Positions 7,921 through 64,000 of a DNA stretch of 64,000 bases are shown in pieces. The stretch lies in the sequence record NC_019407.1; one strand, written 5' to 3'. Below the pieces are notes generated by a model. It was not told the DNA's origin. It did no database searches and saw only the letters and a list, made by a program, of their open reading frames with translations. Numbering within the stretch: position 1 is the stretch's first letter; each line of letters begins with the position of its first letter. The position numbers were made by a program, and so were the translations under genes.

Positions 7921-8129
7921 TGGATCGTCAGGACGTCAAGCCCGGCTTCATCTATCGCGGCGGCAAGAACGGAACCCTGCGTCAGATCGTGAGCTATGGG
8001 GCGACCGAGGATTTCGTCTGCTGGGCCAATCCCCACGATCGCCTGCCCTACGGCGGCTTCATCTCCACCATCTGCACGTCCAGGACGTCGTTCGCCCGCT
8101 GGGCCGACAAGATCGAGGAAGAGGTCTGA
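7917..8129 (+). CDS. hypothetical protein
   Basis: ATGA overlap chain. Confidence 0.75.
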   Translation: MMDRQDVKPGFIYRGGKNGTLRQIVSYGATEDFVCWANPHDRLPYGGFISTICTSRTSFARWADKIEEEV

Positions 8130-8401: not shown

Positions 8402-8655
8402 GGATTCCCCAGCCCGTCGAGTTCACCGTGGCCGACCTCATCGCCCACCTCGCGACCCTGCCCCAGGACGCCAAGGTCGGCGTGCGCGGCGGGTTCGGGG
8501 GCTTCCGGCCGCTCGACGAGATCGCCCCGATCGAACTCGTCACCTTCTACGGCGAGACCGACGTCGACCGCATGACGCTGGCGACCGCCGACCCCATCGC
8601 CATCAACTGGAAGGGCAAGCGCGGCGAGCCCTTCACGGCCATCATTCTCGACTAG
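8398..8655 (+). CDS. hypothetical protein
   Basis: ATGA overlap; TVADLIAHLATLPQD motif. Confidence 0.78.
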   Translation: MRIPQPVEFTVADLIAHLATLPQDAKVGVRGGFGGFRPLDEIAPIELVTFYGETDVDRMTLATADPIAINWKGKRGEPFTAIILD

Positions 8656-8663
8656 GAGGACCC

Positions 8664-8903
8664 ATGACCAACCGTGTCTGGATTGAACTCGAACCGTCCG
8701 CGTCCGAGGGCCACGCCCGCGCCGCCGCCGCGTCGGCCATGCTGAAGCGCCTGGGTGTCGACGTCGGCGTCCACAAGCCGGTGTTCTGGCACGAGCGCAA
8801 TGAGCGCTACTGCTTCACGCTCGACGCCTCGGGCGTCTACGTCGAGGCCGAGGACCACGGCCACTGGTACAACCTCGATTTCCTGGCGGGCGCCGATGTC
8901 TGA
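8664..8903 (+). CDS. hypothetical protein
   Basis: Start moved to MTNRVW after GGAGGA. Confidence 0.78.
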   Translation: MTNRVWIELEPSASEGHARAAAASAMLKRLGVDVGVHKPVFWHERNERYCFTLDASGVYVEAEDHGHWYNLDFLAGADV

Positions 8904-9291
8904 GGTCTTCCCGCCGATCCGCCCCCGCGAGGCCAGGGACGAGGAAATCCACGGCTTCGTCGTCCGCTACGGCTGGTTCTGGAACGTGACCCTGCTGAAC
9001 GGCACGATCCTGGCCTTCGATCCCGACGATGTCGACCCCTGCCGCTACGGCGTGACGGGCAAGGACGACTTCCGCAACCTCGCCGGCGCGCCCGAGACGA
9101 TCGCGTCCTACGAGTGCGTCCAGGGCTGGCACGCCAAGGCCAAGCACCTCTCGGGCTGGACCGAACGTCATGACGACCGGCTCGAAGCCCTGCGGACGGC
9201 CTATCGCCGCCTGGAGGAGCAGCGCGAGCGCAACAGCCGCGCCCTGGAGGAGCACGGCGGCATCTTCAAGTTTCTGGAAGGTCAGGACTGA
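8896..9291 (+). CDS. hypothetical protein
   Basis: Start moved to MSEVFPP; overlap chain. Confidence 0.75.
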   Translation: MSEVFPPIRPREARDEEIHGFVVRYGWFWNVTLLNGTILAFDPDDVDPCRYGVTGKDDFRNLAGAPETIASYECVQGWHAKAKHLSGWTERHDDRLEALRTAYRRLEEQRERNSRALEEHGGIFKFLEGQD

Positions 9292-9533
9292 TGCAGAGGA
9301 CCCTCCATTCGACCGGCCAGGAACTCTCGGTCAAGTTCAAGTTCCCCAATGAAAACCTGACCTTGACCGTGCATGCCGAACAGGACAGCCCGATGGCGTT
9401 CCTCTGGGTCGAAGGTCGCTCGGTCGACTATTTCGAGAAGCTCCTGAGCTTCGAGCCGGCCGATCTCGATCTCTTGATCGCCACCCTGTCCGAGGCGCGC
9501 AAGATGATCCGCGAGCGCGAGCCGCAGGTCTGA
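9291..9533 (+). CDS. hypothetical protein
   Basis: TGATG overlap chain. Confidence 0.75.
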   Translation: MQRTLHSTGQELSVKFKFPNENLTLTVHAEQDSPMAFLWVEGRSVDYFEKLLSFEPADLDLLIATLSEARKMIREREPQV

Positions 9534-9534
9534 C

Positions 9535-9789
9535 ATGCTGACCAAGGACGAGATCACCTTCGCGGGCCTGATCAAGGCCATGGAGGACGCCCGCCGCACC
9601 GCCAAGGCGGCGGGCGATCTCGTCAGCACGGCCGAGATCGACCGCTGGTTCAAGGAACACGCGCCGATCATCCGGGAGGTCCGCGACAAGGCCGAGGCCG
9701 ACGAATTCGACGCTGGCGCGAGAGTGTTGACAACCTCTGAGGAAGGGGCTAAAGACACCCTCGACGACAGCGAAAGGAGCCTGCCTTGA
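9535..9789 (+). CDS. hypothetical protein
   Basis: 84 aa; the 3' end overlaps the next promoter. Confidence 0.7.
   Translation: MLTKDEITFAGLIKAMEDARRTAKAAGDLVSTAEIDRWFKEHAPIIREVRDKAEADEFDAGARVLTTSEEGAKDTLDDSERSLP
9727..9771 (+). promoter_or_regulatory. class-B promoter cassette
   Basis: TTGACA-N17-TAAAGA-N7-GACGACAGC, then AAGGAG. Confidence 0.8.
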
Positions 9790-10805
9790 CCGACTTCCCG
9801 ATCATCCGCGCCGCCATCTCGCCCCGCCGGGCCGCCCAATTCGACGCCGCCCTGGCGAACGTGAAGGCCTTCACCGAGGAAGGCGTCCTGATCAAGGCCG
9901 AGTGGAACGACATCAAGGACACGTTCAGCCGCGCGATCGCCGAGACCTGGGACGCGTTCAAGGACAAGGAATACTACCCCCGCGCCCGCCAGGGCGAGCA
10001 CGAGAACGTCGGCAAGCTCTACTGGGAGCTTCTGAGCCCCTACCCCCATGTCCTGGCCGGCTATCTGAAGAAGGTCCAGAACGCCAAGAACATCGAGCCG
10101 GCGATCCTGCGCGACTTCCCGATCGCCTTCTTCAGCGAGGCCCTGCCGCTCAACGACATGCTGGTCGCCCTGAAGCCGCTGATCGGCAAGCGCGCGCCGA
10201 AGAAGACCAAGGTCCAGATCGAGCGCGAGGGCAAGGAGCGGACCTGTCAGGTCTGCGGTCGCGGCATCCTGGCCGAGAACGGTCGGATCGCCCACCATGG
10301 CTATCAGCGCCCCGGCATGGGCTATCAGACCCCCTCGTGCAGCGGCGCCCTGGAACTGCCCTTCGAGATCAGCCGCGACGCCCTGGGCGCCGACATCGAA
10401 AACCTCAAGGCCTATCGCGCCCGCCGGCAGACCTATCGCTCCGACGTCAACCTGGAACTGGTCAGCCTGCCGGTCAAGTATCAGGTCTCCGAGCAGGACC
10501 CGCGCCGCGCGCCGGGCTTCAAGCACGTGGTCGACAAGATGATCCACGTCACCCGCGCCGACTGGGACGCCCAGAAGGCCGAAACCCCCGAGGCCTTCGC
10601 CGGCAAGTACGGGCCGCGCAAGCCCAACTACACCTACGAGCCCTTCACCTTCGACGCCCTGAAGGCCCAGGTCCTGGGCGTGGTCGACGGCGAGATCGAG
10701 TTCATCACCGGCACGATCCGGGCGCAGCAGAAGCGCTATGACGACTGGAAGCAGACGATGGAGTTCGTCGATGGCCAGTACCGGATGCTGGAGGTCGCGG
10801 CTTGA
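9786..10805 (+). CDS. hypothetical protein with a putative Zn-binding motif
   Basis: 339 aa, TTG start; CQVC...HHG...C motif. Confidence 0.82.
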   Translation: MTDFPIIRAAISPRRAAQFDAALANVKAFTEEGVLIKAEWNDIKDTFSRAIAETWDAFKDKEYYPRARQGEHENVGKLYWELLSPYPHVLAGYLKKVQNAKNIEPAILRDFPIAFFSEALPLNDMLVALKPLIGKRAPKKTKVQIEREGKERTCQVCGRGILAENGRIAHHGYQRPGMGYQTPSCSGALELPFEISRDALGADIENLKAYRARRQTYRSDVNLELVSLPVKYQVSEQDPRRAPGFKHVVDKMIHVTRADWDAQKAETPEAFAGKYGPRKPNYTYEPFTFDALKAQVLGVVDGEIEFITGTIRAQQKRYDDWKQTMEFVDGQYRMLEVAA

Positions 10806-52100: not shown

Positions 52101-54833
52101 GTGAGCTACTATCCGATCGAGGACCGCGCCAAGGCCCGGTCCGTCGTCAAGAACCTGCTGGACCTTCAGCGCGAGGCGGTCAAGGCCTCGCGCGGCGGCC
52201 TGATCCTGCCGCCCGACCAGAAGGCGATCATCACCCAGGTCACCGAGACCGAGGACCCGGCCCGCTGGGTCGATCTGCTGGGTCAGTTCGCCGATCGCGT
52301 CCAGACCGATCACCTCGCCCGGCTCAAGCCCCTGGCCAAGCACGACTTCAACGCCTTCTGCGAATACGTCAATCCCGAGGAGGCCCCGGCCTCCAAGTGG
52401 CACGTCTACCTGACCTCGCTCCTCCAGGAGATCGAGAACAACCACGAGCTTGAGCGCTTCGTGCTCAACTGCCCGCCCGGTCACGCCAAGCCGCTCGACG
52501 TCGACACCGAGGTCCTGATGGCCGACGGGTCCTGGAAGCGCCTGGGCGACATCGAGGTCGGAGAATACGTGGTCGGCGAGAGCGGCGCGCGTTGCAAGGT
52601 CACCGCCGTCCATGAGCAGGGCGATCTCGCCACCCTGAAGATCACCACCGCCCACGGCCGCCAGATCATCGCCGCCCCCGACCACGCCTTCCGGGTCGGC
52701 GCCACCTGGAAGGAGGCGGGCAAGCTGCGGCCGGGCGACGCGCTGTCCGTGGTCGGCGCCGCCAACCTCAACTACGACGCCAGCGGCAAGACCATCGATC
52801 ACTTCGAGCTTGCCGCCTACCTCCAGGCCAAGGGCGGACGCTCCTACTTCCACCGCGTCCACAAGAGCGGGCCGAAGACCTACCGCAACGTCTTCCTGTG
52901 GACCTCCGACCACCGCGAGGCCAGCAAGATCAGCGCCTGCCTCAAGCGCCTGGGGATCGCCTTCAAGGGGCGCCTCGCCAAGCATGAGCAGGTCTGGAAG
53001 ATGCGGCTCGCCACCGAATGGGGCGACGCCCTGGCCGAGGAGTACGGCCTGGACGCGCGGATCGACGCGCGCCGGGTTCCGGCCTTTGTCACGAAAGGTG
53101 ACGAGGAGCAGATCGCCCGCTACCTGTCGACCTACACCTCTCTGGCCGGCGAGGCGCCTGACCGCTACACCATCGCGCGCATCATCCTCTACTTCAAGAA
53201 CCCGGCCTTCGCCCGCGACATCCAGCGCCTGTTCGCCGTGGTCGGCGTCAACGCCCGCATCGAGGGGCGCAAGACCGGCCGCACCCGGCTGATCCTGTCG
53301 GGGCCGGACCTGGAGGCCTACTTCGCCGCCGGCCTGACCTACACCGGTCCCAACGCCGACAAGCTCGACGACAAGCGCGCGGCCTTCCCGACCGCGCCCT
53401 CGCTGCTGGCCGACACCGTCACCTGGATCGAGCCGCACGCCGTGCGCCCCTGCCGCTGCCTGACCGTCGAGGACGAGCACACCTTCATCGCCGAAGGGGT
53501 GGTGGTCCACAACTCGACCTACGCCTCGCGCCTGTTCGTGGCGTGGCGCCTGGGGCGCGATCCGCGCCAGAAGATCATCGGCGGGGGCCACTCCCAGCGC
53601 TTCGTCGAGAACGAGTTCTCCGGCAAGATTCGCAACCTCGTGCGCACCCCGCAATATCGCGACGTCTTCCCCGACGTGGTCATCGACCACGCCACCTCGG
53701 CCAAGGACATGTGGGCGATCGCCGGGCACGGCGGGCAGTACGCCGCCAAGGGCGCGGGGCAGGCCATCCACGGTCTGCGCGCCCACTTCGTCTGCGTCGA
53801 CGACCCCTACCGGTCGATCGAAGTGGCCGAGTCCGCGATCGAGCGCGAGAAGATCAAGACGTGGTTCTTCGGCGACGTTGGCTCGCGTTTGTTGCCGCTC
53901 GCCAAAGTATTCCTCATCATGACGCGCTTCCATGAGGAAGATTTGACCGGGGAGATCATCAAACTCAACCAAGAAGTTCTTACCGGCGCCGACCGTTATC
54001 ACATCGTTGAAGCGCCCGCCCTGTGCTACGACCCCGAGAACGACGTCCTGGGCCGCGCCCTGGGCGAAGTTTTGTGGGACTACTATGACTTGCATTATTT
54101 CAAGCGCAAGCGGTCCGAGTGGAAGTACCAAAGATTTGCTTTGGTTTATCAACAACTTGCCGACGCGGCCTCGGACACCTCCATCGCGTCCAAGTTTCAG
54201 ACCTATGATCACCTGCCGCACCTGGAGCCGAAGGTGCTCAAGGCCCGGCTTGACGCGGGTCACGCCGACGAGCGCGGGCGGCCGATTCCGGACCGCAAGG
54301 AGCACTTCCGGCGGGTGGTGGTCAGCGTCGACTCGGCCAACAAGCCCGGCGCCCGCAACGACTACAGCGTCGCCCAGGTCTGGGGGGAGACCCACGCCCG
54401 CAAGCACTACCTGATCTACCAGGAGCGCAAGAAGGTCGACATCACCGGCCTGACCGAGATGATCGAGCGGGTGGCCAAGCGCTACGAGGTCGACGCCATC
54501 CTGGTCGAAGACAAGGGCAACGGCACCGCCTACATCCAGGCGCGGGGCCAGACCGACAGCCAGCGGCGGCTCGCCCCGGCCCCGATCGAGGCGATCCAGG
54601 TCCCGAGCACCTATTCCAAGGAGTTCCGCTTCAACGAGATCGTCCCGATGATCGAGGCCGGCGAGGTCTTCCTGCCGGGCAAGGCCCCGTGGCTCGACCT
54701 GCTGATCCGCGAAATCGGTCAGTTCCCCGAAGGCGCCCATGACGACCAAGTCGACGCCATGACGCAGTACCTCCGCTGGGCCAAGTCCAAGCGCACGCGG
54801 TTTGGCGCGCGCAAGGTCGGCTCGATGGGCTGA
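52101..54833 (+). CDS. terL: terminase large subunit (intein-containing precursor)
   Basis: Walker A PPGHAK|ST, Walker B VCVDDP, IMTRFHEED, and nuclease motifs SVDSA, LVEDKGNG and HDDQVDA. Confidence 0.95.
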   Translation: MSYYPIEDRAKARSVVKNLLDLQREAVKASRGGLILPPDQKAIITQVTETEDPARWVDLLGQFADRVQTDHLARLKPLAKHDFNAFCEYVNPEEAPASKWHVYLTSLLQEIENNHELERFVLNCPPGHAKPLDVDTEVLMADGSWKRLGDIEVGEYVVGESGARCKVTAVHEQGDLATLKITTAHGRQIIAAPDHAFRVGATWKEAGKLRPGDALSVVGAANLNYDASGKTIDHFELAAYLQAKGGRSYFHRVHKSGPKTYRNVFLWTSDHREASKISACLKRLGIAFKGRLAKHEQVWKMRLATEWGDALAEEYGLDARIDARRVPAFVTKGDEEQIARYLSTYTSLAGEAPDRYTIARIILYFKNPAFARDIQRLFAVVGVNARIEGRKTGRTRLILSGPDLEAYFAAGLTYTGPNADKLDDKRAAFPTAPSLLADTVTWIEPHAVRPCRCLTVEDEHTFIAEGVVVHNSTYASRLFVAWRLGRDPRQKIIGGGHSQRFVENEFSGKIRNLVRTPQYRDVFPDVVIDHATSAKDMWAIAGHGGQYAAKGAGQAIHGLRAHFVCVDDPYRSIEVAESAIEREKIKTWFFGDVGSRLLPLAKVFLIMTRFHEEDLTGEIIKLNQEVLTGADRYHIVEAPALCYDPENDVLGRALGEVLWDYYDLHYFKRKRSEWKYQRFALVYQQLADAASDTSIASKFQTYDHLPHLEPKVLKARLDAGHADERGRPIPDRKEHFRRVVVSVDSANKPGARNDYSVAQVWGETHARKHYLIYQERKKVDITGLTEMIERVAKRYEVDAILVEDKGNGTAYIQARGQTDSQRRLAPAPIEAIQVPSTYSKEFRFNEIVPMIEAGEVFLPGKAPWLDLLIREIGQFPEGAHDDQVDAMTQYLRWAKSKRTRFGARKVGSMG
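52491..53513 (+). mobile_element. intein (341 aa) with a degenerate LAGLIDADG domain
   Basis: Starts PLDVDTEVLMADGSWKRLGDI; block B APDH; block F CRCLTV..EHTF; ends VVHN followed by Ser+1. Confidence 0.92.
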
Positions 54834-54905
54834 CGAGGCCCGTTAACCACGTTTGTTAACCTCCGCCGGGGCCTTAACCCTAACACGGCGAGGGTTAACA
54901 GGCCA

Positions 54906-55066
54906 GGGACCCTTCGAAATTAACCTTTCGGGGACCCTGGGAAATCGTAAGGCGGGGACCCTGGCCATTTTCCGCCTGGGGACCCTCCAAAATTCACCGT
55001 CGGGGACCCTGGGAAATTCATCTTCCGGGGACCCTGGCAAATTCAAAGCCGGGGACCCTGGCGAAT
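54906..55066. repeat. 7-copy tandem array with a 24-25 bp period (core GGGACCCT..AAT)
   Basis: Cores at 54906, 54931, 54955, 54979, 55003, 55028 and 55052. Confidence 0.93.
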
Positions 55067-55067
55067 C

Positions 55068-55271
55068 ATGGAGCCGACGATGGCCGGATTTCTCAACCTG
55101 ATCCCGAACCTCGCGCCGTTCGCGCTTTGGGGAATCCTCCTCTGGATCGCCGCCGAGGTGGTCTGGAGCGTCTGCCTCTGGGTCTATGGCCTGCGAACCC
55201 TGTTCAAGCTGCACCGTGACGATGTGGCCGAGGCCCTGACCCTGGAGCGGGCTCTGGCGCCGTTCGACTGA
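55068..55271 (+). CDS. small membrane protein
   Basis: Hydrophobic FALWGILLWIAAEVVWSVCLWVY. Confidence 0.62.
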   Translation: MEPTMAGFLNLIPNLAPFALWGILLWIAAEVVWSVCLWVYGLRTLFKLHRDDVAEALTLERALAPFD

Positions 55272-55340
55272 CCCAAGTCACGGACTGTAGGTTTCGTGAC
55301 AAGGTGAGATATTCCACAACGATTTCAAAGGCTTACTGCG

Positions 55341-55589
55341 ATGTCGATCCGCACGTTCTTCCACGATCTGGCCGTCCGTTTCGTCGTTTTGGGGTGGATT
55401 TTTGCCCGAAAACCGCTGAAATGGGCTCCAAAAGGGCATAATTTTCAGCCCAAACCGCCGGTCCAGGTCGGCGCCCTGGCGGCCGGCTCGCTCCTCGCCC
55501 TCAGTCTGGCGCTCGGCGGGCTCTGGTTCCGCTTCACGTTTCCGGACAAAAGTCAAGTGGTCTCGCGCCGGCCGCAGGCTATGTCATAG
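55341..55589 (+). CDS. small membrane protein
   Basis: Two hydrophobic segments. Confidence 0.55.
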   Translation: MSIRTFFHDLAVRFVVLGWIFARKPLKWAPKGHNFQPKPPVQVGALAAGSLLALSLALGGLWFRFTFPDKSQVVSRRPQAMS

Positions 55590-55650
55590 ACCGTGGGCTT
55601 CGTGACCAGATCACGCTTCCGTTACCGCTCCAGCCCTTGTGAGGCCTCGG

Positions 55651-55755
55651 ATGTTCGCCTTTCTCCGCCGGCTCAGCCTCGCCGCCGTCCATGGCGTGCT
55701 CTGGGCGATCCTCCTGGCGATGTACGCCGTGGGCGGGCCGCGCCGCGCGCCCTAA
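55651..55755 (+). CDS. 34-aa hydrophobic peptide (not in the ORF track)
   Basis: Hand translation MFAFLRRLSLAAVHGVLWAILLAMYAVGGPRRAP; GAGG upstream. Confidence 0.5.
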   Translation: MFAFLRRLSLAAVHGVLWAILLAMYAVGGPRRAP

Positions 55756-55807
55756 AGCGCCATATCTGACGCCTAAGGCCCCCTAAGGCCTCATCTGTGA
55801 GACATTC

Positions 55808-55843
55808 AACGCCCTCGTGTTCCTCTGAACGCGGGGGCGTTTT
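55808..55843 (+). terminator. Rho-independent terminator
   Basis: AACGCCCTCGTGTTC-CTCT-GAACGCGGGGGCGTT followed by TT. Confidence 0.7.
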
Positions 55844-55951
55844 GACGTCGGCGCATTTTTGACTTGACGCGCGAGCGTTTTGACGCGGGCGCATTTTCGA
55901 TTCGACGCGCGAGCGTTTTGACGTCCGAGCATTTTTCAACTTGACGTCGTT
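55837..55951. repeat. 3 x 38-bp tandem repeat
   Basis: GCGTTTTGACG..GCATTTT..(C/T)T(T/C)GACG units at 55837, 55875 and 55913. Confidence 0.88.
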
Positions 55952-55975
55952 CCATTTACCGGGAGCGCCTTAGGG

Positions 55976-56142
55976 TTAACGCCGGCCGCCGAGCCCTGGG
56001 GCGATTTACCACCGCCACGTTAACCTAACGCCTGTTAACCTATCGGTTGTTAAGGTTAACGCCCCGTTAGGGTTAACGCCCCTTAACCCTGCCCGCGTTA
56101 AGGTTAACGCGCCCGCCGCCCGGCCCTACCCGTTAACCTTAA
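55976..56142. repeat. TTAA/GTTAAC cluster
   Basis: 11 TTAA in 167 bp, including GTTAAGGTTAAC twice and its reverse complement once. Confidence 0.8.
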
Positions 56143-56194
56143 CCGCCAGACCCCCGCGCCCAGGCCCTACCCGGTAGGGCCTGACGGCCCTACC
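56122..56194. repeat. GGCCCTACC x3 with a perfect inverted repeat
   Basis: Copies at 56122, 56163 and 56186; GGCCCTACC-C-GGTAGGGCC at 56163-56181. Confidence 0.75.
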
Positions 56195-56253
56195 GGGTAT
56201 GACCCCGCGCCCCGGCGGAGGCCAGGGACCGCCCCGGCGCTTTTTCGCGCCCG

Positions 56254-56285
56254 TTTACCTTTTGTTAACGTCTGGCCTCTAGGGT
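56254..56285 (+). promoter_or_regulatory. CtrA-box promoter P1
   Basis: TTTA-N7-TTAA-N11-TAGGGT. Confidence 0.75.
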
Positions 56286-56333
56286 CGCCCTTGTCCCCGC
56301 CGCACTCCCGCGCCGGGCAAGGAGCTTCCCGCC

Positions 56334-56519
56334 ATGGTCCCCGACTCGATCATGAACCCCCGCGACCACTTCCACCGCCTGCGCGAGGAAACCGCCCGCG
56401 CTCTGGTCGAGGCCTTCGCCGAAACCGACCCCGGCGAGGATTACCGCGCCGAGGAAAAGGCCGGCGCGTGGGTTGTCGCCTATTACGACGCGGCGGGCGA
56501 ATTCGTCGCCTATCTCTAA
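56334..56519 (+). CDS. small hypothetical protein
   Basis: SD AAGGAG after P1. Confidence 0.75.
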   Translation: MVPDSIMNPRDHFHRLREETARALVEAFAETDPGEDYRAEEKAGAWVVAYYDAAGEFVAYL

Positions 56520-56543
56520 CCGCCTTCGCCCCCTGGCGCCGCG

Positions 56544-56575
56544 TTAACGGTTTGTTAACATGTCGGCGCCAGGGT
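56544..56575 (+). promoter_or_regulatory. CtrA-box promoter P2
   Basis: TTAA-N7-TTAA-N11-CAGGGT. Confidence 0.75.
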
Positions 56576-56618
56576 CGCCCTAGCCCGGCGCGTCGCCGCG
56601 CCTTCGGAGAAAACCGCC

Positions 56619-57422
56619 ATGCTCTACACCCCCGCCGCCCGCCGCCTTCGCGGCTATCGCGAAACCGCCGCGAAGAACGCCGAAATTCACGCCCGCCCGC
56701 ACATGGCCGGCAACGTCGCCGGCTACAACGAGTCGGTGTGGCCGACGACGGCGCTAGGCGTCGCCGCCAAGGCCGGCGCCTTCAAGCGCCCCGAAACCGC
56801 CGGCAACTGGTCGGAGGATCGCAAAGCCTATTACGCCCCCGCGTGGCCGGCCGGCTGGCGCGTGCTGGGCACGGCCGAAGAGGTCTGCCGCAAGGAAGGA
56901 TCGCGCCGGGTGGAACATTCCGGATGGTACACGACGCCCGACGACTACAGCGCCACGCTTTCGGGCTATGTGCTGCAAATCCCCGCCCGCGACGGGGTCG
57001 CCCAATACGTCGCCGGGACCGCCCATAGTGAATGGGACGGGGTGACCCTCTACCCCGCCGACCGCTACGACAACCCGCTTGACGCGGCGAGCGCCGCCGA
57101 CCGTCACGCCGAACGCGACGCCGAAGAGGAACGCGAATATCAAACCGCGTGGCAAGCGGGCCAGCGCTACGCCGAACTCGGCGCCGAAGCCAAGGAGGCC
57201 CGCAAGGAAGCGCTGGCGATCCTCGCCGAACGCCGCAAGGTCAAGGGGCTGGAAACCCCCGCCTTGTGCGGCGCGATCCGGGCGCAGGTCGAGGCCCTGC
57301 TAGGCCGGATCGAAGAGGCGCGCGAGGCCCGCGCCAAGCTCAAGGAAGGCGAGGATTCGCGCCTCATGTTCTACCCCTCCGCCCGCCTCGTCGCGGCCTT
57401 CAATGACGGGGCGGCCGGGTGA
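56619..57422 (+). CDS. hypothetical protein
   Basis: SD GGAG; 267 aa. Confidence 0.82.
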   Translation: MLYTPAARRLRGYRETAAKNAEIHARPHMAGNVAGYNESVWPTTALGVAAKAGAFKRPETAGNWSEDRKAYYAPAWPAGWRVLGTAEEVCRKEGSRRVEHSGWYTTPDDYSATLSGYVLQIPARDGVAQYVAGTAHSEWDGVTLYPADRYDNPLDAASAADRHAERDAEEEREYQTAWQAGQRYAELGAEAKEARKEALAILAERRKVKGLETPALCGAIRAQVEALLGRIEEAREARAKLKEGEDSRLMFYPSARLVAAFNDGAAG

Positions 57423-57628
57423 AGGTCGCCCGCGACGCCTTCGCCGTGTTCTGGACCCTCCCCGCCGGAGGGGTCCAATTTCATGCGGACATGAAACGGG
57501 CGCTCTACCCGACCGCCCGCGACGCCGCCCGCGCTTTTCGCGCCATGTTCCCCCGTGACCGCGTTCGGAGCGTCCGCGACGCCTCCGGCCGCTTCCTGGC
57601 CTTCAAGGAGTCCAACCCGTGCGCCTGA
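57419..57628 (+). CDS. hypothetical protein
   Basis: GTGA overlap. Confidence 0.68.
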   Translation: MKVARDAFAVFWTLPAGGVQFHADMKRALYPTARDAARAFRAMFPRDRVRSVRDASGRFLAFKESNPCA

Positions 57629-57900
57629 CTAGCTACAACGTCAACGGAACCGGCTTTAAGGGCGGCTCCGCCCCGCCCGTCCCCGCCCAAGGCCTGACCG
57701 GGCACGCCGACGGCTTGAACCTTTGGGTTCCCTCGCGCGAGCATATCGCCGCCATGCTCCCGCAACGCTGGCGCCACGCCTTCGCCCACGCGGCGTTTTG
57801 GTATGACGCGCACGACAACAAAAAGCCGTGCCGCGCCGACCTCTACGACTCGCGCGGCCGGTACCTGACTCAGGTCTGGGCGCACCCGGTTTTCAGCTAG
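57619..57900 (+). CDS. hypothetical protein
   Basis: GTG start after AAGGAG. Confidence 0.7.
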   Translation: MRLTSYNVNGTGFKGGSAPPVPAQGLTGHADGLNLWVPSREHIAAMLPQRWRHAFAHAAFWYDAHDNKKPCRADLYDSRGRYLTQVWAHPVFS

Positions 57901-57906
57901 GCCAGG

Positions 57907-57941
57907 ACGCCCCGGAAGATTTTCCGGGGCGTTTACCTTTT
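57907..57941 (+). terminator. Rho-independent terminator overlapping P3
   Basis: ACGCCCCGGAA-GATT-TTCCGGGGCGT followed by TTACCTTTT. Confidence 0.8.
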
Positions 57942-57963
57942 GTTAACTTCTGGCCTCTAGGGT
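57932..57963 (+). promoter_or_regulatory. CtrA-box promoter P3
   Basis: TTTA-N7-TTAA-N11-TAGGGT. Confidence 0.78.
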
Positions 57964-58021
57964 GACTTTCGCCGCCGGGCAATCCCGCCCGCCGGACCCT
58001 CTTTCAAGGATTGCTCCCGTC

Positions 58022-59074
58022 ATGACCTCTCATTCCATGGTCGCGCACCGTTGGGCGCAGGACGACGAGAACGGCCGCACCGCGCGCGGCTTCAACATGT
58101 ATTTCGAGCGCTACGGGCGCGGCGCCGACCGCGTCAACGTGATTTTTTCCTACGGGACTCACTTCCCGGCCGCCGCCTTCGTGACCGACGCGCACGGCCG
58201 CCGCGTGGTCCTCTACACGACGCACCGCCGGAGCGTTTCGACCGCGAAACACCTTTCCCACATCCGCCACGCGATTCCGTCGGGCGTGCCGGTGTTTTCC
58301 GTGCCGAACGTGTCGCGGATGCACAAGCCGGGCGGCGCGGGCGACTTCCACGGGGACAACCTGCGCGCCTATATCGAGAGCGCCGCCGGCCTCGCCGAAA
58401 AGGCCAAGCGCGCCCGCGTCAACGGCCCTTGGCTGCTTAGCCAAGCCCGCGACCAACTCGCCGAAGCGCAACGCTACGCCGACGCCTTCAAGGTCAAGGG
58501 CTTCAAGGTCCCGGCCTTGGAAGACGTCGCCGGCCAATGGGCGAAGATGACGGCCGCCAAGGCGCGGGCCGAAGCCAAGGCCCGCAAGGAAGCCGAAAAG
58601 CGCGCCCGCGAAGCCCGCGAAGCCGAACGGCTCGCCGACGCCGAAGCCTTCGCCGCTTGGATGCGCGGCGAGCGCCAGAGCGCCCCGTTTAGCTACCGGG
58701 TGCGCGATGACGGGACCGTCTATCTTCGCCGCTTCCGGGGCGTGGTCCGCGACCTGCGCAGCCAAGAGCGCGACGGCTCGCGCGTCGATGAACTGCAAAC
58801 CTCGCAAGGCGCGGCCGTGCCGTGGGAACACGCGGTCAAGGCCTTCCGGTTCATCAAGCTTTGCCGCGAACGCGGCGAGAGCTTCCACCGCAACGGCCGG
58901 GTGATTCGCGTCGGACACTTCCAAGTTGACGCGATCAGCCCGAACGGGGACATGACGGCCGGTTGCCACCGGTTCGCGTGGGATGAAATCGAACGCATCG
59001 CCAGGGCCGAAGGGGTTTTCGACCTCCCCGCCGACGCCGGCGCCGTCGAAACCCGGCAAGCCGAACCGGCCTAA
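58022..59074 (+). CDS. hypothetical protein
   Basis: Start moved to MTSHSMV after AAGGA; IFSYGTHFP motif; coiled-coil centre. Confidence 0.82.
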   Translation: MTSHSMVAHRWAQDDENGRTARGFNMYFERYGRGADRVNVIFSYGTHFPAAAFVTDAHGRRVVLYTTHRRSVSTAKHLSHIRHAIPSGVPVFSVPNVSRMHKPGGAGDFHGDNLRAYIESAAGLAEKAKRARVNGPWLLSQARDQLAEAQRYADAFKVKGFKVPALEDVAGQWAKMTAAKARAEAKARKEAEKRAREAREAERLADAEAFAAWMRGERQSAPFSYRVRDDGTVYLRRFRGVVRDLRSQERDGSRVDELQTSQGAAVPWEHAVKAFRFIKLCRERGESFHRNGRVIRVGHFQVDAISPNGDMTAGCHRFAWDEIERIARAEGVFDLPADAGAVETRQAEPA

Positions 59075-59092
59075 GCCTCCCCGCCCCTCTCG

Positions 59093-59119
59093 CGCCCCGG
59101 CTCCCCGCCGGGGCGTTTT
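59093..59119 (+). terminator. Rho-independent terminator
   Basis: CGCCCCGG-N7-CCGGGGCG-TTTT. Confidence 0.82.
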
Positions 59120-59129
59120 CGTGTACGCG

Positions 59130-59161
59130 GTAACCTTTTGTTAACTTCTGGCCTCTAGGGT
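59130..59161 (+). promoter_or_regulatory. CtrA-box promoter P4
   Basis: GTAA-N7-TTAA-N11-TAGGGT. Confidence 0.75.
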
Positions 59162-59209
59162 GACTTTCGCCGCCGGGCAATCCCGCCCGCCGGCCAAGGA
59201 TCGCAGACT

Positions 59210-59509
59210 ATGAATCTTTTCGTTGTCGCCATTGACCCCGCCCTCATCCCTTCGGCCGCCGGCTTTGTGGTCGCCTCCCCCTACGGGTGCGGCAAGTGGC
59301 GCGCGTGCGTCGGGAGCGAGGCGGACATGATCGCGCTTCGCGACAAGATGCGCCGCGCGCACCCGGCCCCGGAAGGCTACAGCGTCCAGCCCCTGGCGTC
59401 GTTCCTGGCCTATCTGGAGACGGTCGGGCAAAGCCCTTATGACCAGTTTCGCGCCCGCGACGCCGCCGCCCGCATCCTTGACACCCTGACAACGCACCTC
59501 GCCGCCTAG
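59210..59509 (+). CDS. hypothetical protein
   Basis: SD AAGGA after P4. Confidence 0.78.
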   Translation: MNLFVVAIDPALIPSAAGFVVASPYGCGKWRACVGSEADMIALRDKMRRAHPAPEGYSVQPLASFLAYLETVGQSPYDQFRARDAAARILDTLTTHLAA

Positions 59510-59518
59510 CCCCGCCTA

Positions 59519-59548
59519 GCCCCCGGCCGCGCGCCGGGGGCGCTTTTC
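59519..59548 (+). terminator. Rho-independent terminator
   Basis: GCCCCCGG-N7-CCGGGGGC followed by GCTTTT. Confidence 0.7.
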
Positions 59549-59568
59549 CCTCGAAAGGATCGCCGACC

Positions 59569-59877
59569 ATGACAACCCGTCTTATCGCCGTTCGCGCGCC
59601 GACCGCCGCCGAACTCGCCGACCCGTCCAGCCGCGCGGGCGGCGCCGAAGTCGTCTTTGTGCGGCGCGACCGCGAAGGCCGCACGCGCCTTGTGTTCGCC
59701 GCGACCTGCTACGGCTCATATCAGCAATGGGGCGAAACCCGCGACGTGCTCGCCGACAACGTCGAGGCGGTCACCGTCTGGGCCGAAGGTATGGCGGCCG
59801 TCGCCGACCTCATCGACGAGGACGACGATTTCGAGGGCGACGACGCCCCGGCCGAAGACGACGACGGGGAGGCGTGA
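59569..59877 (+). CDS. hypothetical protein with an acidic tail
   Basis: SD AAGGA. Confidence 0.78.
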   Translation: MTTRLIAVRAPTAAELADPSSRAGGAEVVFVRRDREGRTRLVFAATCYGSYQQWGETRDVLADNVEAVTVWAEGMAAVADLIDEDDDFEGDDAPAEDDDGEA

Positions 59878-59880
59878 GCC

Positions 59881-60300
59881 ATGCGCACAACCAAGGCTCA
59901 ACGCTTCGCCGCCATCGCCTTTGACGCCCTGGCCAAGGCCCTAAGCGAGCCGCGCCAAGCCGTCGCCCGCGTGACCAAATGGGAGGGCGCGGGTCATAGC
60001 TTCGCCAACCTGCAACGCGATTATGAGCGGTACGGCCCCGGCTCGCGCTCATGGTTCGGCCGGGCTGAAATGCGCTTCTTTGGGACGCGCCTAGAGGCCG
60101 CGCCGCTGGATTTCCCGGCGCTGGGCTGCACCCTCTTTCTGACCTCCGAAACCCCGCCCGGCGCCGGCCGGGTCTGGACCCTTCGCGCCTATGTCTGGGC
60201 TTCGGCCGATATCACCACGCTAACCCATGGCGACGAAACCGACGCGGCGACCGCGCAAGCGGCCTTTGACCTGCTTTGGAGGGTCCTTTCGCAGCGGTAA
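59881..60300 (+). CDS. hypothetical protein
   Basis: SD GGAGG; the stop codon lies in the P5 box. Confidence 0.75.
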   Translation: MRTTKAQRFAAIAFDALAKALSEPRQAVARVTKWEGAGHSFANLQRDYERYGPGSRSWFGRAEMRFFGTRLEAAPLDFPALGCTLFLTSETPPGAGRVWTLRAYVWASADITTLTHGDETDAATAQAAFDLLWRVLSQR

Positions 60301-60328
60301 CCTTTTGTTAACTTCTGCCCGCTAGGGT
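60297..60328 (+). promoter_or_regulatory. CtrA-box promoter P5
   Basis: GTAA-N7-TTAA-N11-TAGGGT. Confidence 0.75.
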
Positions 60329-60376
60329 CTTCTTGCGGCCGGGCAATCCCGCCCGGCCGCCCAAGGATTGGACCGC

Positions 60377-60649
60377 ATGACCCGCGCTCAAGCCCTCGCC
60401 GAAATGAACGCCCTTCCCGGTATCATCGCCTCCTTTGAGCGCGAGACGGGTGAATATCGCGTCACCCTGCGCTTTGGTCCGCTCCCCATGGGGCGCGGCG
60501 CCCAAGAGTGGATGCACGCGCGCCGCGAAGCCGTCGCCAGCTACAGCGACGACAAGGCCGACGCCCTGGCCACCGCCCGCGACATGTCCGCCCGCTGGGA
60601 GGCGATGAGCGCCGAAGAGCGTTCGCGCCTCTATCATAACCCCGCCTAA
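60377..60649 (+). CDS. hypothetical protein
   Basis: ATG 9 nt after AAGGA. Confidence 0.78.
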   Translation: MTRAQALAEMNALPGIIASFERETGEYRVTLRFGPLPMGRGAQEWMHARREAVASYSDDKADALATARDMSARWEAMSAEERSRLYHNPA

Positions 60650-60715
60650 AGCCCCGCGCGCCGCCCTGGCCTTCGCCGGGGCGGCTCCCTCAACCCCTCG
60701 CAAGGATCGCACCCC

Positions 60716-61000
60716 ATGACCGCCCGTAAGCCCCTGACCAAGGAACAAAAGGCCCGCCGCCGCGCGACCCGTCGCGCCGCCCGCCTCAACTGGTCGGATG
60801 AGCGCCGCGCTCGCGAATTCGAGCGTCAAGCCCGCTTCTTCCTGATGATCGCCACCCACGCCCAAGGCGCCGGCCAAGGCCAGGAAGCCGCCCGCCTCGC
60901 CACGGTCGCGCAACGCAAGGTCACAAACTGGCGCATGGCGCAGGCCTGCGCCCGGATTAACGCCCTGGCCGCGCATCCGTTCGCGGCCGTGGTCGCCTAA
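60716..61000 (+). CDS. Arg-rich hypothetical protein
   Basis: SD AAGGA. Confidence 0.75.
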   Translation: MTARKPLTKEQKARRRATRRAARLNWSDERRAREFERQARFFLMIATHAQGAGQGQEAARLATVAQRKVTNWRMAQACARINALAAHPFAAVVA

Positions 61001-61013
61001 GGAGGCCCGCCCG

Positions 61014-61196
61014 ATGACGCACCCTCACGCCCTGGCGCTGATCGCCCTCGCTGAAAAGGTGTTGCCGCTTACCCGGCTGCACCCGCTCGACCAACGCGCC
61101 GCCGCCGTCGATCTAATCGGCGACCTCTACCGCCTCGCCGACGATATCGACGCGACCCCGCAAGCCGCCGCCCTGGCGCAACCGAAGGCCGCCTAA
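61014..61196 (+). CDS. small hypothetical protein
   Basis: SD AAGGAGG. Confidence 0.75.
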   Translation: MTHPHALALIALAEKVLPLTRLHPLDQRAAAVDLIGDLYRLADDIDATPQAAALAQPKAA

Positions 61197-61199
61197 GCC

Positions 61200-61790
61200 A
61201 TGAACCCGAACCGCTACCGCCTCGCGCCCCGCGACCGCTTCAGCCGTGAGCTTTCCGAAACGCTCTATCAGGCGGCCGAAGCCGTCGCCCGCGTGATTCC
61301 GCTCATGCCGGAGTCCGCCCCCGATGAGCGCCGCGCGCTGGGCAAGGTCCGCGCCGACCTTCTAACCCATAGCGCCGGCGCCCTTGTTCCCAAGCCGCCG
61401 GCCGCCGTGCTCGCAACCCTCATTTGGGTTGTCGAGATGGCGCAAGATCGCGCCACAAACGCCGATTTCAACACCGCCCAAGAGGGACTCGACGAACACG
61501 AGTCCCTCGCCTTTGTCGCCGACTGGCTGGAGGCCGAAGGCCTAGACGTGACGCCGATTCGCAACGCGCAACCGTCCGCCGACGCCCTGGCCGAACTCGC
61601 CGCCCGCCGCGACGCCGAACAAGCGGCGCTAGACGCCTTGGAGGCCGAAGCCCTGGCCGAAGCGCCGGGCGACGTGATCACCGACATCTTGCGCCCTTAT
61701 CTGGGCTCCATCCTGGCCGAAACCCACGCCGACGACGTGCTAGACGCCCTCACGCGCGCCGGCTTCCAAATCACCCGCAAGGAGGCCTAA
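61200..61790 (+). CDS. hypothetical helical protein
   Basis: Packed chain. Confidence 0.78.
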   Translation: MNPNRYRLAPRDRFSRELSETLYQAAEAVARVIPLMPESAPDERRALGKVRADLLTHSAGALVPKPPAAVLATLIWVVEMAQDRATNADFNTAQEGLDEHESLAFVADWLEAEGLDVTPIRNAQPSADALAELAARRDAEQAALDALEAEALAEAPGDVITDILRPYLGSILAETHADDVLDALTRAGFQITRKEA

Positions 61791-61795
61791 AGCCC

Positions 61796-62365
61796 ATGAC
61801 CGACTCCGCCAAGATCACCGGCGCGCTCGCGCTACTCGCCGTCGCGGCCGATAATCTCCGCCAAGGCCCGGCCATGTCCAAAGCCGCCGACAACGTCACC
61901 AACGTCTGTAACTACGCCCTGACGCGCGCGGCCATGCTCAAGGCCGCCGACCAAATCGGCGAGGCGCTGGAGGCGCTGGGCGCCCTGCAAGCGGGCGGCT
62001 ATGTGATCGCCCGCCGCCGCGACGTTTTCACCGATGCGGGCGAGAAGCTGGGCGACCTGTTGGCGGCGCTTTATGACGCCGTCCCGAACTACGCCGTAAG
62101 ATCGCAGCGCCTCGCCGACGCCCTGGCCCCGGCGCGAAATTACGTCTATCAGCCCCGGTTCCGGGTCAAGCTGGACGCCGCGCCCGGCGCGCTTTTGACC
62201 GACTGCGACACGGGCGCAACGGTCTATTTCCAGCCGGGCGACGACGCCGACGCCTTCCGGGCCGAATTCGCCCCGTGGGTTCACGCCGCCAACGTGACGG
62301 GCGACGGCGCGGCCCTGGCCTCGATGATGAACCCGACCGCCGAAGAGTATTTCAGCCCCGCCTAA
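61796..62365 (+). CDS. hypothetical protein
   Basis: Start moved to MTDSAK after AAGGAGG. Confidence 0.78.
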   Translation: MTDSAKITGALALLAVAADNLRQGPAMSKAADNVTNVCNYALTRAAMLKAADQIGEALEALGALQAGGYVIARRRDVFTDAGEKLGDLLAALYDAVPNYAVRSQRLADALAPARNYVYQPRFRVKLDAAPGALLTDCDTGATVYFQPGDDADAFRAEFAPWVHAANVTGDGAALASMMNPTAEEYFSPA

Positions 62366-62475
62366 GTCATCATTCCTACCGTCTATGACTTGTCACCGGC
62401 CGAAGTCTTACCCGGTGACAGTCTGGGCAAGTAAAGCTCACTCTGGATTTTATGACTTAGCGCAAAGGATTGAAA

Positions 62476-62550
62476 TTGCTCGAAAAATTCCTAGAAGCTC
62501 ACAAAGTCGTTTTCTGGCTGCTCTTGCTGGCCTGTTTGTGGCGCTTTTAA
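62476..62550 (+). CDS. candidate 24-aa hydrophobic peptide
   Basis: TTG start 6 nt after AAAGGA; MLEKFLEAHKVVFWLLLLACLWRF; atypical AT-rich codons. Confidence 0.35.
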   Translation: MLEKFLEAHKVVFWLLLLACLWRF

Positions 62551-62579
62551 CGGTTTGTTAACCCCTGGCCCTCTAGGGT
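62547..62579 (+). promoter_or_regulatory. CtrA-box promoter P6
   Basis: TTAA-N7-TTAA-N12-TAGGGT. Confidence 0.8.
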
Positions 62580-62633
62580 CGAATTCCCGGCGCGGCAATC
62601 CCGCCGCCCGGCCTTCCTTCGGAGCTTCTGATC

Positions 62634-63080
62634 ATGTTCGCTTCCGTGACCCTTCCCGCCCATGACGCCCAAGGCCTGAGCCTCGAAACCGTCCACATGG
62701 TTTTCGCCCGTGAACTGGCGCAACACTTCGAGCACGTAATTTCCGCCCCCGTGATCGAAAGCTGGACCGACGAGGAAACCGGCGCCGTGCAAGAGCAAGC
62801 CGCCGTTTGCTTCACCGTTTCGGCGACCCCGGCCGCGTGGGAAGCCAAGGGCGGCCGGCTCGCGCGCCGGCTGGAAAACCTCGCCGCGCGCTATGCCGCC
62901 GACTGCGACGCCCCGGCCCTGACTGTCACCCATTGCGACGGGCAAACGGTCTATGTCGGCGCTCTGGAAGCCCTGGCGCGCCCCGCCCCGGTGCAAGGCC
63001 CGACCCGCGCGGCGGACCCGGCTTTCCTCCCCCGCCAGCGTGAAGACAAGGCCGCCCGCTTCGATCGCCTGACCGCCTAG
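62634..63080 (+). CDS. hypothetical protein
   Basis: SD GGAG after P6. Confidence 0.78.
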   Translation: MFASVTLPAHDAQGLSLETVHMVFARELAQHFEHVISAPVIESWTDEETGAVQEQAAVCFTVSATPAAWEAKGGRLARRLENLAARYAADCDAPALTVTHCDGQTVYVGALEALARPAPVQGPTRAADPAFLPRQREDKAARFDRLTA

Positions 63081-63098
63081 CCCCTGGCCTCCCCCTAG

Positions 63099-63129
63099 CG
63101 CACCGCCCCTAGAAAGGCGGTGCGCTTTT
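63099..63129 (+). terminator. Rho-independent terminator
   Basis: GCACCGCC-N8-GGCGGTGC followed by GCTTTT. Confidence 0.78.
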
Positions 63130-63138
63130 CTGTGTCTG

Positions 63139-63171
63139 TTTACTTGTTGTTAAGGAATAGCCTGCTAGTGT
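63139..63171 (+). promoter_or_regulatory. CtrA-box promoter P7
   Basis: TTTA-N7-TTAA-N12-TAGTGT. Confidence 0.72.
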
Positions 63172-63222
63172 CTCCTTGTCGGCGGACGCATCCCGCGCCC
63201 GCCCCTTTCTGGATCGCTTCCC

Positions 63223-63615
63223 ATGGCTCGCCCCTCTGACCTGCTCAACGTCAACGCCGCCCGCGTCCTGGCTTGCCTTGAGCCTATCGCCGCCGCCGCT
63301 AAGACGGCCCCGGCCGCCGACCGCGCCGCCCTTTCCTACCTGCTCGACGCTGGCGAGTATGTCGCCGCGTGGCGCCGCAACCTCACGGAAACCGACCGCC
63401 GCAAGGCCTATGGCGCGGCCTGCGCCGCCGAAGCCCTGGCGCTCGCCAACGCCTATCAGCCCGCCACCCTGCAAGGCGGCGCCGTCCGCCGCGCTCTGGG
63501 CGCCTATGCCGCCGCCCTTAAGGTCCTGCTAGACGGGGAGCCGGTTAAGGCGGTCCGCGCCGCCGAAGGCGCGGCGCTTTCGGTCCGCGCTCGCTACGCC
63601 AACACCCGCCTTTAA
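63223..63615 (+). CDS. Ala-rich hypothetical protein
   Basis: ORF after P7; the stop codon lies in the P8 box. Confidence 0.75.
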   Translation: MARPSDLLNVNAARVLACLEPIAAAAKTAPAADRAALSYLLDAGEYVAAWRRNLTETDRRKAYGAACAAEALALANAYQPATLQGGAVRRALGAYAAALKVLLDGEPVKAVRAAEGAALSVRARYANTRL

Positions 63616-63643
63616 CCTCTTGTTAAGACCTCCCGGCTATGGT
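63612..63643 (+). promoter_or_regulatory. CtrA-box promoter P8
   Basis: TTAA-N7-TTAA-N11-TATGGT. Confidence 0.78.
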
Positions 63644-63669
63644 CGGGAGGTCGCAAGGAGACACCCGAC

Positions 63670-63864
63670 ATGACCCGCCCCGGCCCCGCCTCGCTCTTGA
63701 CCCCGCAAGCCCGTTTCTCGTCGCCGCGCGTCCTGATCCTTCCGGGCGCGGCTCCCATGCCGATTCGCCAGCCGCGCGGCCTTTGCGCCGTCGAGTGCGT
63801 CGCCCTTGGCGTGACGCTGGGCGCGGCGCTCTACCTCGCCGCCCGCGTGTTCGGTCTGGTCTGA
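63670..63864 (+). CDS. small protein with a C-terminal TM helix
   Basis: SD AAGGAG; VALGVTLGAALYLAARVFGLV. Confidence 0.7.
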   Translation: MTRPGPASLLTPQARFSSPRVLILPGAAPMPIRQPRGLCAVECVALGVTLGAALYLAARVFGLV

Positions 63865-63927
63865 CCAGACCCCCGCCCCGCCCCCGGTCGGACCGGTCGG
63901 GGGTGTGTCCCATAATGACACACCCCC
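63854..63927. repeat. cluster of perfect palindromes
   Basis: GTCTGGTC-T-GACCAGAC, CCGGTC-G-GACCGG and GGGGGTGTGTC-CCATAAT-GACACACCCCC. Confidence 0.8.
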
Positions 63928-64000
63928 CGCCACCTAGTATCTTTTTTGATTCGGAGGGACCCAAAGGCCCCCTACGTTAACCATTTTTGGCGGCGCCCCC

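Follow-up and report, generated by a model that had tools for sequence, protein, structure and literature searches.

What is the role of a small GC-rich hairpin that stands, again and again in the same phage, between a CtrA-type promoter and the ribosome-binding site of the message that follows? This question is raised by the right end of the genome of Caulobacter phage CcrMagneto, which supplied the stretch of DNA analyzed here and called the window (64,000 nucleotides of record NC_019407.1; its positions 56000-64000 match positions 1946-9946 of JX100812 with 100% identity). The direct terminal repeat (DTR) of this phage is 9946 bp long and its end coincides with the end of the window, so that the right DTR spans 54055-64000. 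An earlier note on this DNA, made from the sequence alone, had drawn attention to a 5'-terminal RNA hairpin with a conserved loop in six leaders of the repeat and had proposed that it is a binding site. Our analysis confirmed that the element is real, on the strength of its position, recurrence and covariation, and the earlier interpretation as a whole was partly supported. The reading that we favor, tentatively and at somewhat less than an even chance, is that the hairpin would be a 5'-terminal stem-loop shielding the mRNA 5' end and leaving only the ribosome-binding site single-stranded.

The DTR contains eight promoters of the same design, all on the + strand, in which a TTAA-N7-TTAA-like box is located 10-11 nt upstream of a TANNGT hexamer. 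The six promoters linked to the hairpins conform to (T/G)T(T/A)A(C/A)-N7-TTAA at 10-11 nt upstream of TANNGT, which places them in the CtrA-activated class. It has been reported that the box of CtrA-activated host promoters lies at -35 (PMC11264516), and the geometry of the phage promoters agrees with this placement. CtrA binding, by electrophoretic mobility shift assay, and CtrA-dependent activity, by lacZ fusion, were reported for the gp005 and gp018 promoters of phiCbK (PMC9437464), which are orthologous to the CcrMagneto promoters at 56543 and 62547, respectively. Among the six hairpin-linked promoters, CtrA dependence has thus been shown for one (P5 in Table 1) by way of its phiCbK gp018 orthologue, and the other five are putative members of the class, assigned by similarity. 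A canonical terminator directly precedes three of the six units. There is no CtrA-type promoter before gp010, and therefore expression of gp010 and gp011 needs read-through of the terminator-like hairpin that follows gp009.

The motif that the earlier note had singled out lies where it was said to be, with CAATCCCG at 57980, 59178, 60344 and 62596, CACTCCCG at 56303 and CATCCCG at 63189, in all six leaders 15-17 nt downstream of the -10 hexamer. The 8 nucleotides that had been described as the loop are indeed conserved, but the loop is shorter than that: when the leaders were folded, the first C and the last G paired with each other, leaving a true loop of AAUCCC (at 57981, 59179, 60345 and 62597), ACUCCC (56304) or AUCCC (63190), closed by an invariant C-G pair and then by a G-C pair. 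Similarly, the stems quoted earlier (60335-60360, 62593-62606 and 63181-63203) read as described and their claimed tendency to differ while keeping their pairing was borne out by covariation, but only the one at 60335-60360 is a perfect helix, of 10 bp, and each of the other five is interrupted, either by a mismatch (C.C or A.C) or by a bulge. The stem begins 7-13 nt downstream of the -10 hexamer. Between the two there is a conserved YYTTG, the T-G of which lies 7-8 nt after the hexamer, where the start site is expected; with +1 set at the conserved G, as we predict, 0-3 nt would be unpaired at the 5' end, in keeping with the earlier description of a structured element on the transcribed strand that begins at about the predicted +1. 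At its other side, the stem ends 2-3 nt before the Shine-Dalgarno (SD) sequence in many copies, especially those of the AUCCC type. The repeated unit begins with the CtrA box, extends through the whole hairpin and measures about 67 nt (repeat family D1), and two copies of this family are 97-100% identical. The use of G.U as opposed to A.C pairs as an indicator of the strand was uninformative, the A.C mismatch of hairpin 6 pointing the other way.

Table 1. CtrA-type promoters, leader hairpins and a terminator-like hairpin in the right terminal repeat of CcrMagneto (window positions; z, folding energy against dinucleotide shuffles; bits, covariance model score).
Feature	Position	Strand	End of -10 hexamer	Description	z	Bits
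P1	56254..56285	+	56285	CtrA-type, pattern match, TTTAC-N7-TTAAC, -10 TAGGGT; upstream of gp004; member of 67-nt repeat family D1		
Hairpin 1	56296..56317	+		loop ACUCCC, 4+3 bp plus mismatch; weakest copy	+0.34	28.9
Seventh CtrA-type promoter (gp005) and its leader hairpin	56543..56602	+		hairpin GGCGCG/UCGC/CGCGCC at 56587-56602; same layout, other loop		
P2	57932..57963	+	57963	CtrA-type, upstream of gp008; terminator 57905-57934 directly before		
Hairpin 2	57972..57995	+		CCGCCGGGC / AAUCCC / GCCCGCCGG, one C.C mismatch	-0.9	38.2
P3	59130..59161	+	59161	CtrA-type, upstream of gp009; terminator 59092-59116 before		
Hairpin 3	59169..59194	+		as hairpin 2 with one extra outer pair	-1.76	38.5
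Terminator-like hairpin with T-run	59519..59541	+		between gp009 and gp010; equivalent phiCbK site annotated as terminator		
P4	60297..60328	+	60328	CtrA-type, upstream of gp012; first half-site overlaps gp011 stop codon		
Hairpin 4	60335..60360	+		perfect 10-bp GCGGCCGGGC / AAUCCC / GCCCGGCCGC; -27 kcal/mol	-3.39	40.4
P5	62547..62579	+	62579	CtrA-type, upstream of gp017; orthologue of phiCbK gp018 promoter (PMC9437464)		
Hairpin 5	62587..62611	+		CCGG-C-GCGGC / AAUCCC / GCCGCCCGG; arms unlike hairpins 2-4, one bulge	-2.0	34.5
P6	63139..63171	+	63171	CtrA-type, -10 TAGTGT, upstream of gp018; terminator 63097-63126 before		
Hairpin 6	63181..63203	+		GGCGG-A-CGC / AUCCC / GCG-C-CCGCC; pentaloop, A.C mismatch	-1.9	28.3

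The recurrence of the element was examined with a covariance model built from 35 distinct copies. On both strands of the window, the six leaders scored 28-40 bits and the next match, at 18 bits, was a terminator. A search of related phages, which the earlier note had suggested, was made in a 197-kb set comprising the DTRs of 12 phiCbK-like phages, pieces of CcrPW and CcrColossus, a contig of an uncultivated phage and a stretch of Brevundimonas phage Kabachok, and it returned 84 matches in 16 of the 17 loci searched, none being found in the 835-nt Kabachok stretch. All 84 lie just downstream of a CtrA-type promoter in the sense orientation, and each phiCbK-like repeat holds 5-8 of them. Three of the matches are on the opposite strand, as part of a cassette in reverse orientation (gp004c of Rogue, Swift and BL64); the loop flips along with the promoter there, and in the sense of that promoter its sequence is AUCCC or ACCCC.

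In a loop-anchored alignment, 77% of the cells were paired, compared with 62% in column shuffles (none of 500 shuffles reached the observed value) and 35-49% when the partner was slid by 1-3 columns, and the covariation score was 0.38 versus at most 0.19 in the slid controls. When a larger, model-derived alignment was considered as well, the respective ranges were 77-81%, 62-66% and 35-51%. The third pair (12-23) is G-C in 18 sequences, C-G in 17 and unpaired in none, and RNAalifold independently recovered the five inner pairs. The copies are paralogous cassettes, and therefore the proper null for them is common descent and not independent chance. The length of perfect stems did not discriminate in GC-rich DNA and was replaced by a comparison of SD sites: a perfect hairpin with 5 or more Watson-Crick pairs that ended at most 5 nt from the SD was present at 39% of the sites behind CtrA-type promoters (n = 69) versus 4% of other SD/ATG sites of the same DNA (n = 505), a control set that includes many false starts inside genes (Fisher p = 3e-15; upstream minimum free energy -12.6 versus -7.3 kcal/mol). 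The bare 8-mer showed no enrichment in the 64-kb window.

Comparison of orthologous leaders revealed how the arms change. For example, the arms of the gp017 leader are CCGGCGCGGC/GCCGCCCGG in Magneto versus GCGGCCGGGC/GCCCCGCCGC in Rogue, with the loop unchanged. In the gp018 leader, both bases of the A.C mismatch of Magneto are absent in BL57 and BL10, leaving a perfect helix, and in BL57 an outer G-C pair has become A-U. The 26-nt hairpin of the gp012 leader is identical in 10 of the 12 phages, with flanks (the -10 region and the SD region) that diverge, and in BL57 it is replaced by GGGCGGGGG/AUCG/CCCCCGCCC. In CcrPW and CcrColossus, hairpins between promoter and SD carry AUCCC, ACCCC, AACCC, AUCGG or CGG loops, and in one locus they follow 11 of 13 promoters. 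Because AUCGG and CGG loops occur there in the same position, a hairpin at this position is more general than the CAAUCCCG loop. A separate observation in these two phages is that several CtrA-type promoters (CcrPW locus L166 at -6194, -11142 and +3282; CcrColossus loci L169 and L171) drive a conserved repeat of about 55 nt, GUAGCCGGCGGGACCGGCGGGGCCGGGCUCUUCGAACCGUAGGGGCGCUACGG, which has no obvious SD or open reading frame (ORF) and is a candidate small RNA.

The author of the earlier note did not recognize the element, and neither did the databases or the literature: Rfam gave no match at E up to 1 on either strand of 54000-64000, the papers describing these promoters and the phiCbK genome (PMC9437464 and the phiCbK genome paper) do not mention a hairpin, stem-loop or untranslated region (UTR), and among the papers listed by a full-text literature search none links phiCbK with any of the three; no published description was found. 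A search for the promoter followed by a class A hairpin in one representative genome per bacterial species yielded 12 chance matches and no cassette, with none in Caulobacter. A scan of IMG/VR with the bare 15-mer CGGGCAATCCCGCCC was abandoned as a criterion, since among the matches listed most were due to chance and only 3 were real cassettes. In a control search of IMG/VR with GCCGGGC-N6-GCCCGGC, 1 of the 116 hairpins sharing this 7-bp stem had the phage loop, which thus shows no general enrichment, and therefore we do not claim a widespread motif. Several unrelated IMG/VR contigs (L014/L120/L121, L117/L125, L051, L106 and L122) have intergenic hairpins with a GGGC-AAUCCC-GCCC core and stems of 9-11 bp, which differ in their outer pairs and show compensatory changes between L014 and L121; these may be a coincidence. 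Elements of this kind, with a stem-loop in the 5' leader as part of a cassette of promoter plus stem-loop, are known; the novelty lies in the conserved loop, the link with a CtrA-dependent promoter class, and the spread over several phiCbK-like, Colossus-like and CcrPW-like phages.

The reading as a stabilizing stem-loop requires no partner and is the simplest one. The order of parts in the cassette of about 70 bp is a CtrA box overlapping the -35 region, a -10 element TAGNGT, YYTTG with its G as the likely +1, the GC-rich hairpin, the SD and the start codon. From such a promoter, the hairpin would form in the RNA 0-3 nt from the predicted 5' end, and nearly the only single-stranded RNA of the leader would be the ribosome-binding site. 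The hairpin would then most likely block 5'-end-dependent decay (removal of pyrophosphate and entry of RNase E) and at the same time prevent the GC-rich leader from pairing with the SD. As a result, transcripts produced in a pulse of CtrA activity would persist longer and be translated. CtrA is limited to a part of the host cell cycle, and long-lived messages may extend the output of a brief transcription window.

Several observations weigh against this reading. Single-sequence folding barely beat dinucleotide shuffles in five of the six copies (rounded z-scores of +0.3, -0.9, -1.8, -3.4, -2.0 and -1.9 for copies 1-6), hairpin 1 being no better than its shuffles and only hairpin 4 clearly better; GC-rich hairpins are common in this genome, whose GC content is 66%, and random 40-mers also fold well. 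Hairpins are absent from the leaders of CtrA-type promoters in phage Kabachok and of most such promoters in contig L168. The transcription of the 5' arm is itself a prediction, the start site having been placed from sequence. Furthermore, any loop would do for a pure stabilizer, but the apex of G-C-(A)-A-N-C-C-C-G-C, which comprises the loop and the two pairs that close it, is invariant in 48 of 48 distinct matches, and there are the identical gp012 hairpins noted above. Either the sequence is read or the copies have been homogenized by recombination, and any role of the apex would be putative.

If the sequence is read, the apex could be the site of a trans-acting factor, such as a phage protein (for example, gp013, whose gene lies in this repeat, with its arginine-rich N-terminus), a host protein or a G-rich RNA, which would unite these messages in one regulon and act either by nut-like antitermination through the terminators within the repeat or by translational shut-off. 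We regard this as possible but doubtful. The loop and its closing pairs do not vary where the outer stem does, and an AUCCC loop is common to CcrColossus, CcrPW and the uncultivated phage, the repeats of which are otherwise very divergent (PMC9437464). That the loop is rare among hairpins with the same stem in IMG/VR also argues that it is not generically favored. In addition, a short conserved motif followed by a hairpin right after an early promoter recalls boxA-boxB, and the terminator between gp009 and gp010 is not followed by a promoter. The 94-amino-acid protein gp013 (60716-61000; N-terminus RKPLTKEQKARRRATRRAARLNW) is 74-100% identical in all 12 phiCbK-like phages and has 10 arginine or lysine residues among its first 20, a stretch kept in 12 of 12; it is a candidate RNA-binding protein.

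However, no binding partner of the hairpin was found, neither the RNA-binding protein nor the small RNA that the earlier note had envisaged. As a homologue of the antitermination protein N, gp013 was rejected, with no match to a Pfam family or a solved N peptide at E up to 10 and only the arginine-rich composition alike; it has no match in PDB, belongs to a PHROG family of unknown function, and has no comparable counterpart in the CcrPW and CcrColossus pieces. The nut site of lambda consists of boxA and boxB, bound by N, and boxB is a short hairpin with a GNRA-like pentaloop. The phage loops (AAUCCC, AUCCC and ACUCCC, on stems of 7-10 bp) are not GNRA-like, no boxA consensus lies 5' of the hairpin, where only YYTTG is conserved and is more simply read as the start site, and no member of the N family was found among the terminal-repeat proteins. 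A downstream terminator to be read through (59519-59541, with no promoter after it) is the only nut feature that was present, and the two-stem layout of put was not seen; the earlier suggestion of antitermination like nut/put is therefore not borne out. Nor did RNA partners emerge, since the antisense CGGGAUUG is absent from the window and CGGGATTG, the antisense partner that the earlier note had thought worth seeking, is absent from the + strand of the 64 kb. Pairing of the loop with the SD, including a pseudoknot, was rejected, since the complementarity (GCAAUCC/GGAUUGC) exists in only two of the six leaders, 2 and 4, the latter with a linker of 4 nt, which is too short, and since the SD varies (GGAG or GGAU) where the loop is constant. 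CcnA was likewise rejected as a partner, because its loop A, CCCC, resembles rather than complements the phage loop. Moreover, the hairpin families with AUCGG and CGG loops, which occupy the same position, would fall outside such a regulon, and the identity of the loops could also be explained by duplication of the cassette and gene conversion. A more specific form of this proposal, in which the (A)AUCCC apex is an address tag shared by the CtrA-class transcripts of phiCbK-like phages and read by a dedicated factor, the N-terminus of gp013 being the obvious candidate, appears to us rather improbable. If it were true, the tag would define a post-transcriptional regulon over the CtrA regulon, and either N/boxB-like processive antitermination or coordinated translational shut-off would be the first for an alphaproteobacterial phage.

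If the copies have instead been homogenized, the hairpin might be a passenger of a promoter cassette that is spread by recombination, without an RNA function of its own; its conservation would reflect concerted evolution, and its main effect would be to provide short homologous linkers for the shuffling of small genes, as for the PeSL elements of T4. The 67-nt family, with its near-identical copies, spans both promoter and hairpin, and the small ORFs of unknown function are flanked by pairs of terminator and promoter. A repeated terminator with an early promoter motif in a plastic region, as in PeSLs, which are composite terminator/promoter recombination points (PMC4122927), was found at 57905/57932, 59092/59130 and 63097/63139 and in the 67-nt family. 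CtrA sites have been reported to be gained and lost from one of these repeats to another (PMC9437464), and a mosaic joint lies at the 3' edge of the hairpin in Karma, which combines a Magneto-type promoter and hairpin with a BL57-type SD region. Another joint, a duplication joint at TTG, is present in Ccr29. As sole explanation, this is quite improbable in our judgment, because a passenger would lose structure and not only sequence, whereas in BL57, CcrPW, CcrColossus and the gp005 leader this position is taken by unrelated hairpins, compensatory changes and a compensatory double deletion are seen, and there is a strong enrichment of hairpins immediately before promoter-proximal SD sites. The Ccr29 joint (L003, 9788-9830) fuses a CtrA-type promoter, at the conserved TTG, to a second copy of gp013, which would yield a leaderless or TTG-initiated message without hairpin.

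It is very improbable that the element acts as double-stranded DNA, either as an inverted-repeat operator or as an initially transcribed sequence to which a repressor binds or which influences promoter escape (a candidate being the TGTCG-type motif once proposed for SciP). In favor of such a role, its location at +1 to +26 can be reached by RNA polymerase, its arms are strongly conserved in orthologues, and several leaders show TTGTCG at the predicted +1, similar to the disputed TGTCGCG of SciP (PMC4083442). Against it, the arms differ between copies while complementarity and the orientation relative to transcription are kept, which a DNA-reading protein would not tolerate, the center is asymmetric, and mutation of TGTCGCG had no effect on binding (PMC4083442).

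The right DTR encodes 19 small proteins, all without known function; Pfam assigned solely DUF7447, a domain of unknown function, in gp011 and gave a sub-threshold match in gp015, and all 8 of the DTR proteins scanned against PHROGs fell into families of unknown function. For phiCbK-like phages, it has been proposed that the terminal-repeat genes couple infection to the host cell cycle via CtrA, which was called "lytic deferment" (PMC9437464). Other features of the repeat were noted as well. At the gp019 promoter (63627-63652), an inverted repeat, GACCTCCCG / CGGGAGGTC, has the -10 element (GCTATGGT) as its loop and reads CCCCCCG / CGGGGGG in phiCbK, Ccr29, Swift and others, a compensatory change; this promoter belongs to the same class, but the structured element on it is a different one. 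A region without ORF (55990-56260), located immediately before the first CtrA-type promoter, is dense in TTAAC/GTTAA half-sites, with 16 in 270 nt where the remainder of the window would predict about 0.2, and could be a CtrA-titrating or other regulatory region. Two more arrays of short period lie in the left part of the repeat (54906-55062 and 55829-55942; families D2 and D4), one of GGGGACCCTGG-type units with a period of about 24 nt and the other of ACGCG..GCGTTTTGACG units. The true start of gp008 is probably the in-frame ATG at 58022, which has an SD (AAGGA at 58006-58010), whereas the annotated ATG at 58037 has none; the longer form is annotated in Ccr29. Between gp016 and the gp017 promoter there is an AT-rich island (62366-62545; GC 0.48 versus 0.66), which possibly holds an unannotated hydrophobic ORF of 26 codons starting from TTG at 62470.

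So far, only the transcription of these genes has been studied. The presence of a conserved, covarying 5' hairpin on most of their messages implies a further level of control, which may act via the lifetime or translation of the mRNA or via a factor that binds the loop, and which would set the time over which a pulse of CtrA activity is remembered. The leader is a compact and portable module that can be tested in C. crescentus NA1000, and it provides a defined RNA bait in the search for a partner. In addition, the cassette suggests a route by which small genes are shuffled within the repeat.

Among known systems, the closest to the reading that we favor is the hp1 hairpin in the 5' UTR of E. 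coli ompA, which Emory, Bouvet and Belasco reportedly described in 1992 as a 5'-terminal stem-loop that stabilizes mRNA. The principle established with ompA is that base pairing at the very 5' end hinders the 5'-end-dependent entry of the decay machinery. Both are GC-rich hairpins that lie within a short leader, at or near the 5' end (a predicted one in the phage) and before the SD, and in both the position outweighs the sequence of the arms; unlike hp1, the phage hairpin has a conserved loop and 5-8 paralogous copies per terminal repeat on one promoter class. Lambda nut and HK022 put are similar in that a short conserved linear motif is followed by a hairpin with a conserved loop of 5-6 nt just after early promoters, with terminators downstream and, close by, the gene of a small protein whose N-terminus is rich in arginine. 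In contrast to nut, the phage has an (A)AUCCC loop, stems of up to 10-11 bp, no boxA consensus and no detectable N homologue, and in its repeat each small operon has its own copy; put has two stem-loops, whereas the phage leaders have one. With the PeSLs of T4 (PMC2839356, PMC4122927), the cassette shares small composite, repeated stem-loop and early promoter motifs that flank small ORFs of unknown function in a plastic region, and like them it may coincide with mosaic joints. However, the stem-loop of a PeSL is a terminator before the promoter, which is a plain sigma-70 early promoter, whereas the phage leaders add a hairpin after a CtrA-dependent promoter, within the transcript. Finally, loop A (CCCC) of the Caulobacter small RNA CcnA (PMC8959179) is likewise a C-rich loop on a stable stem in a CtrA regulatory setting, and C-rich apical loops pair with G-rich or SD-like sequences (PMC8959179); CcnA is a small RNA, whereas the phage loop, for which no target and no loop-SD covariation were found, is part of mRNA leaders.

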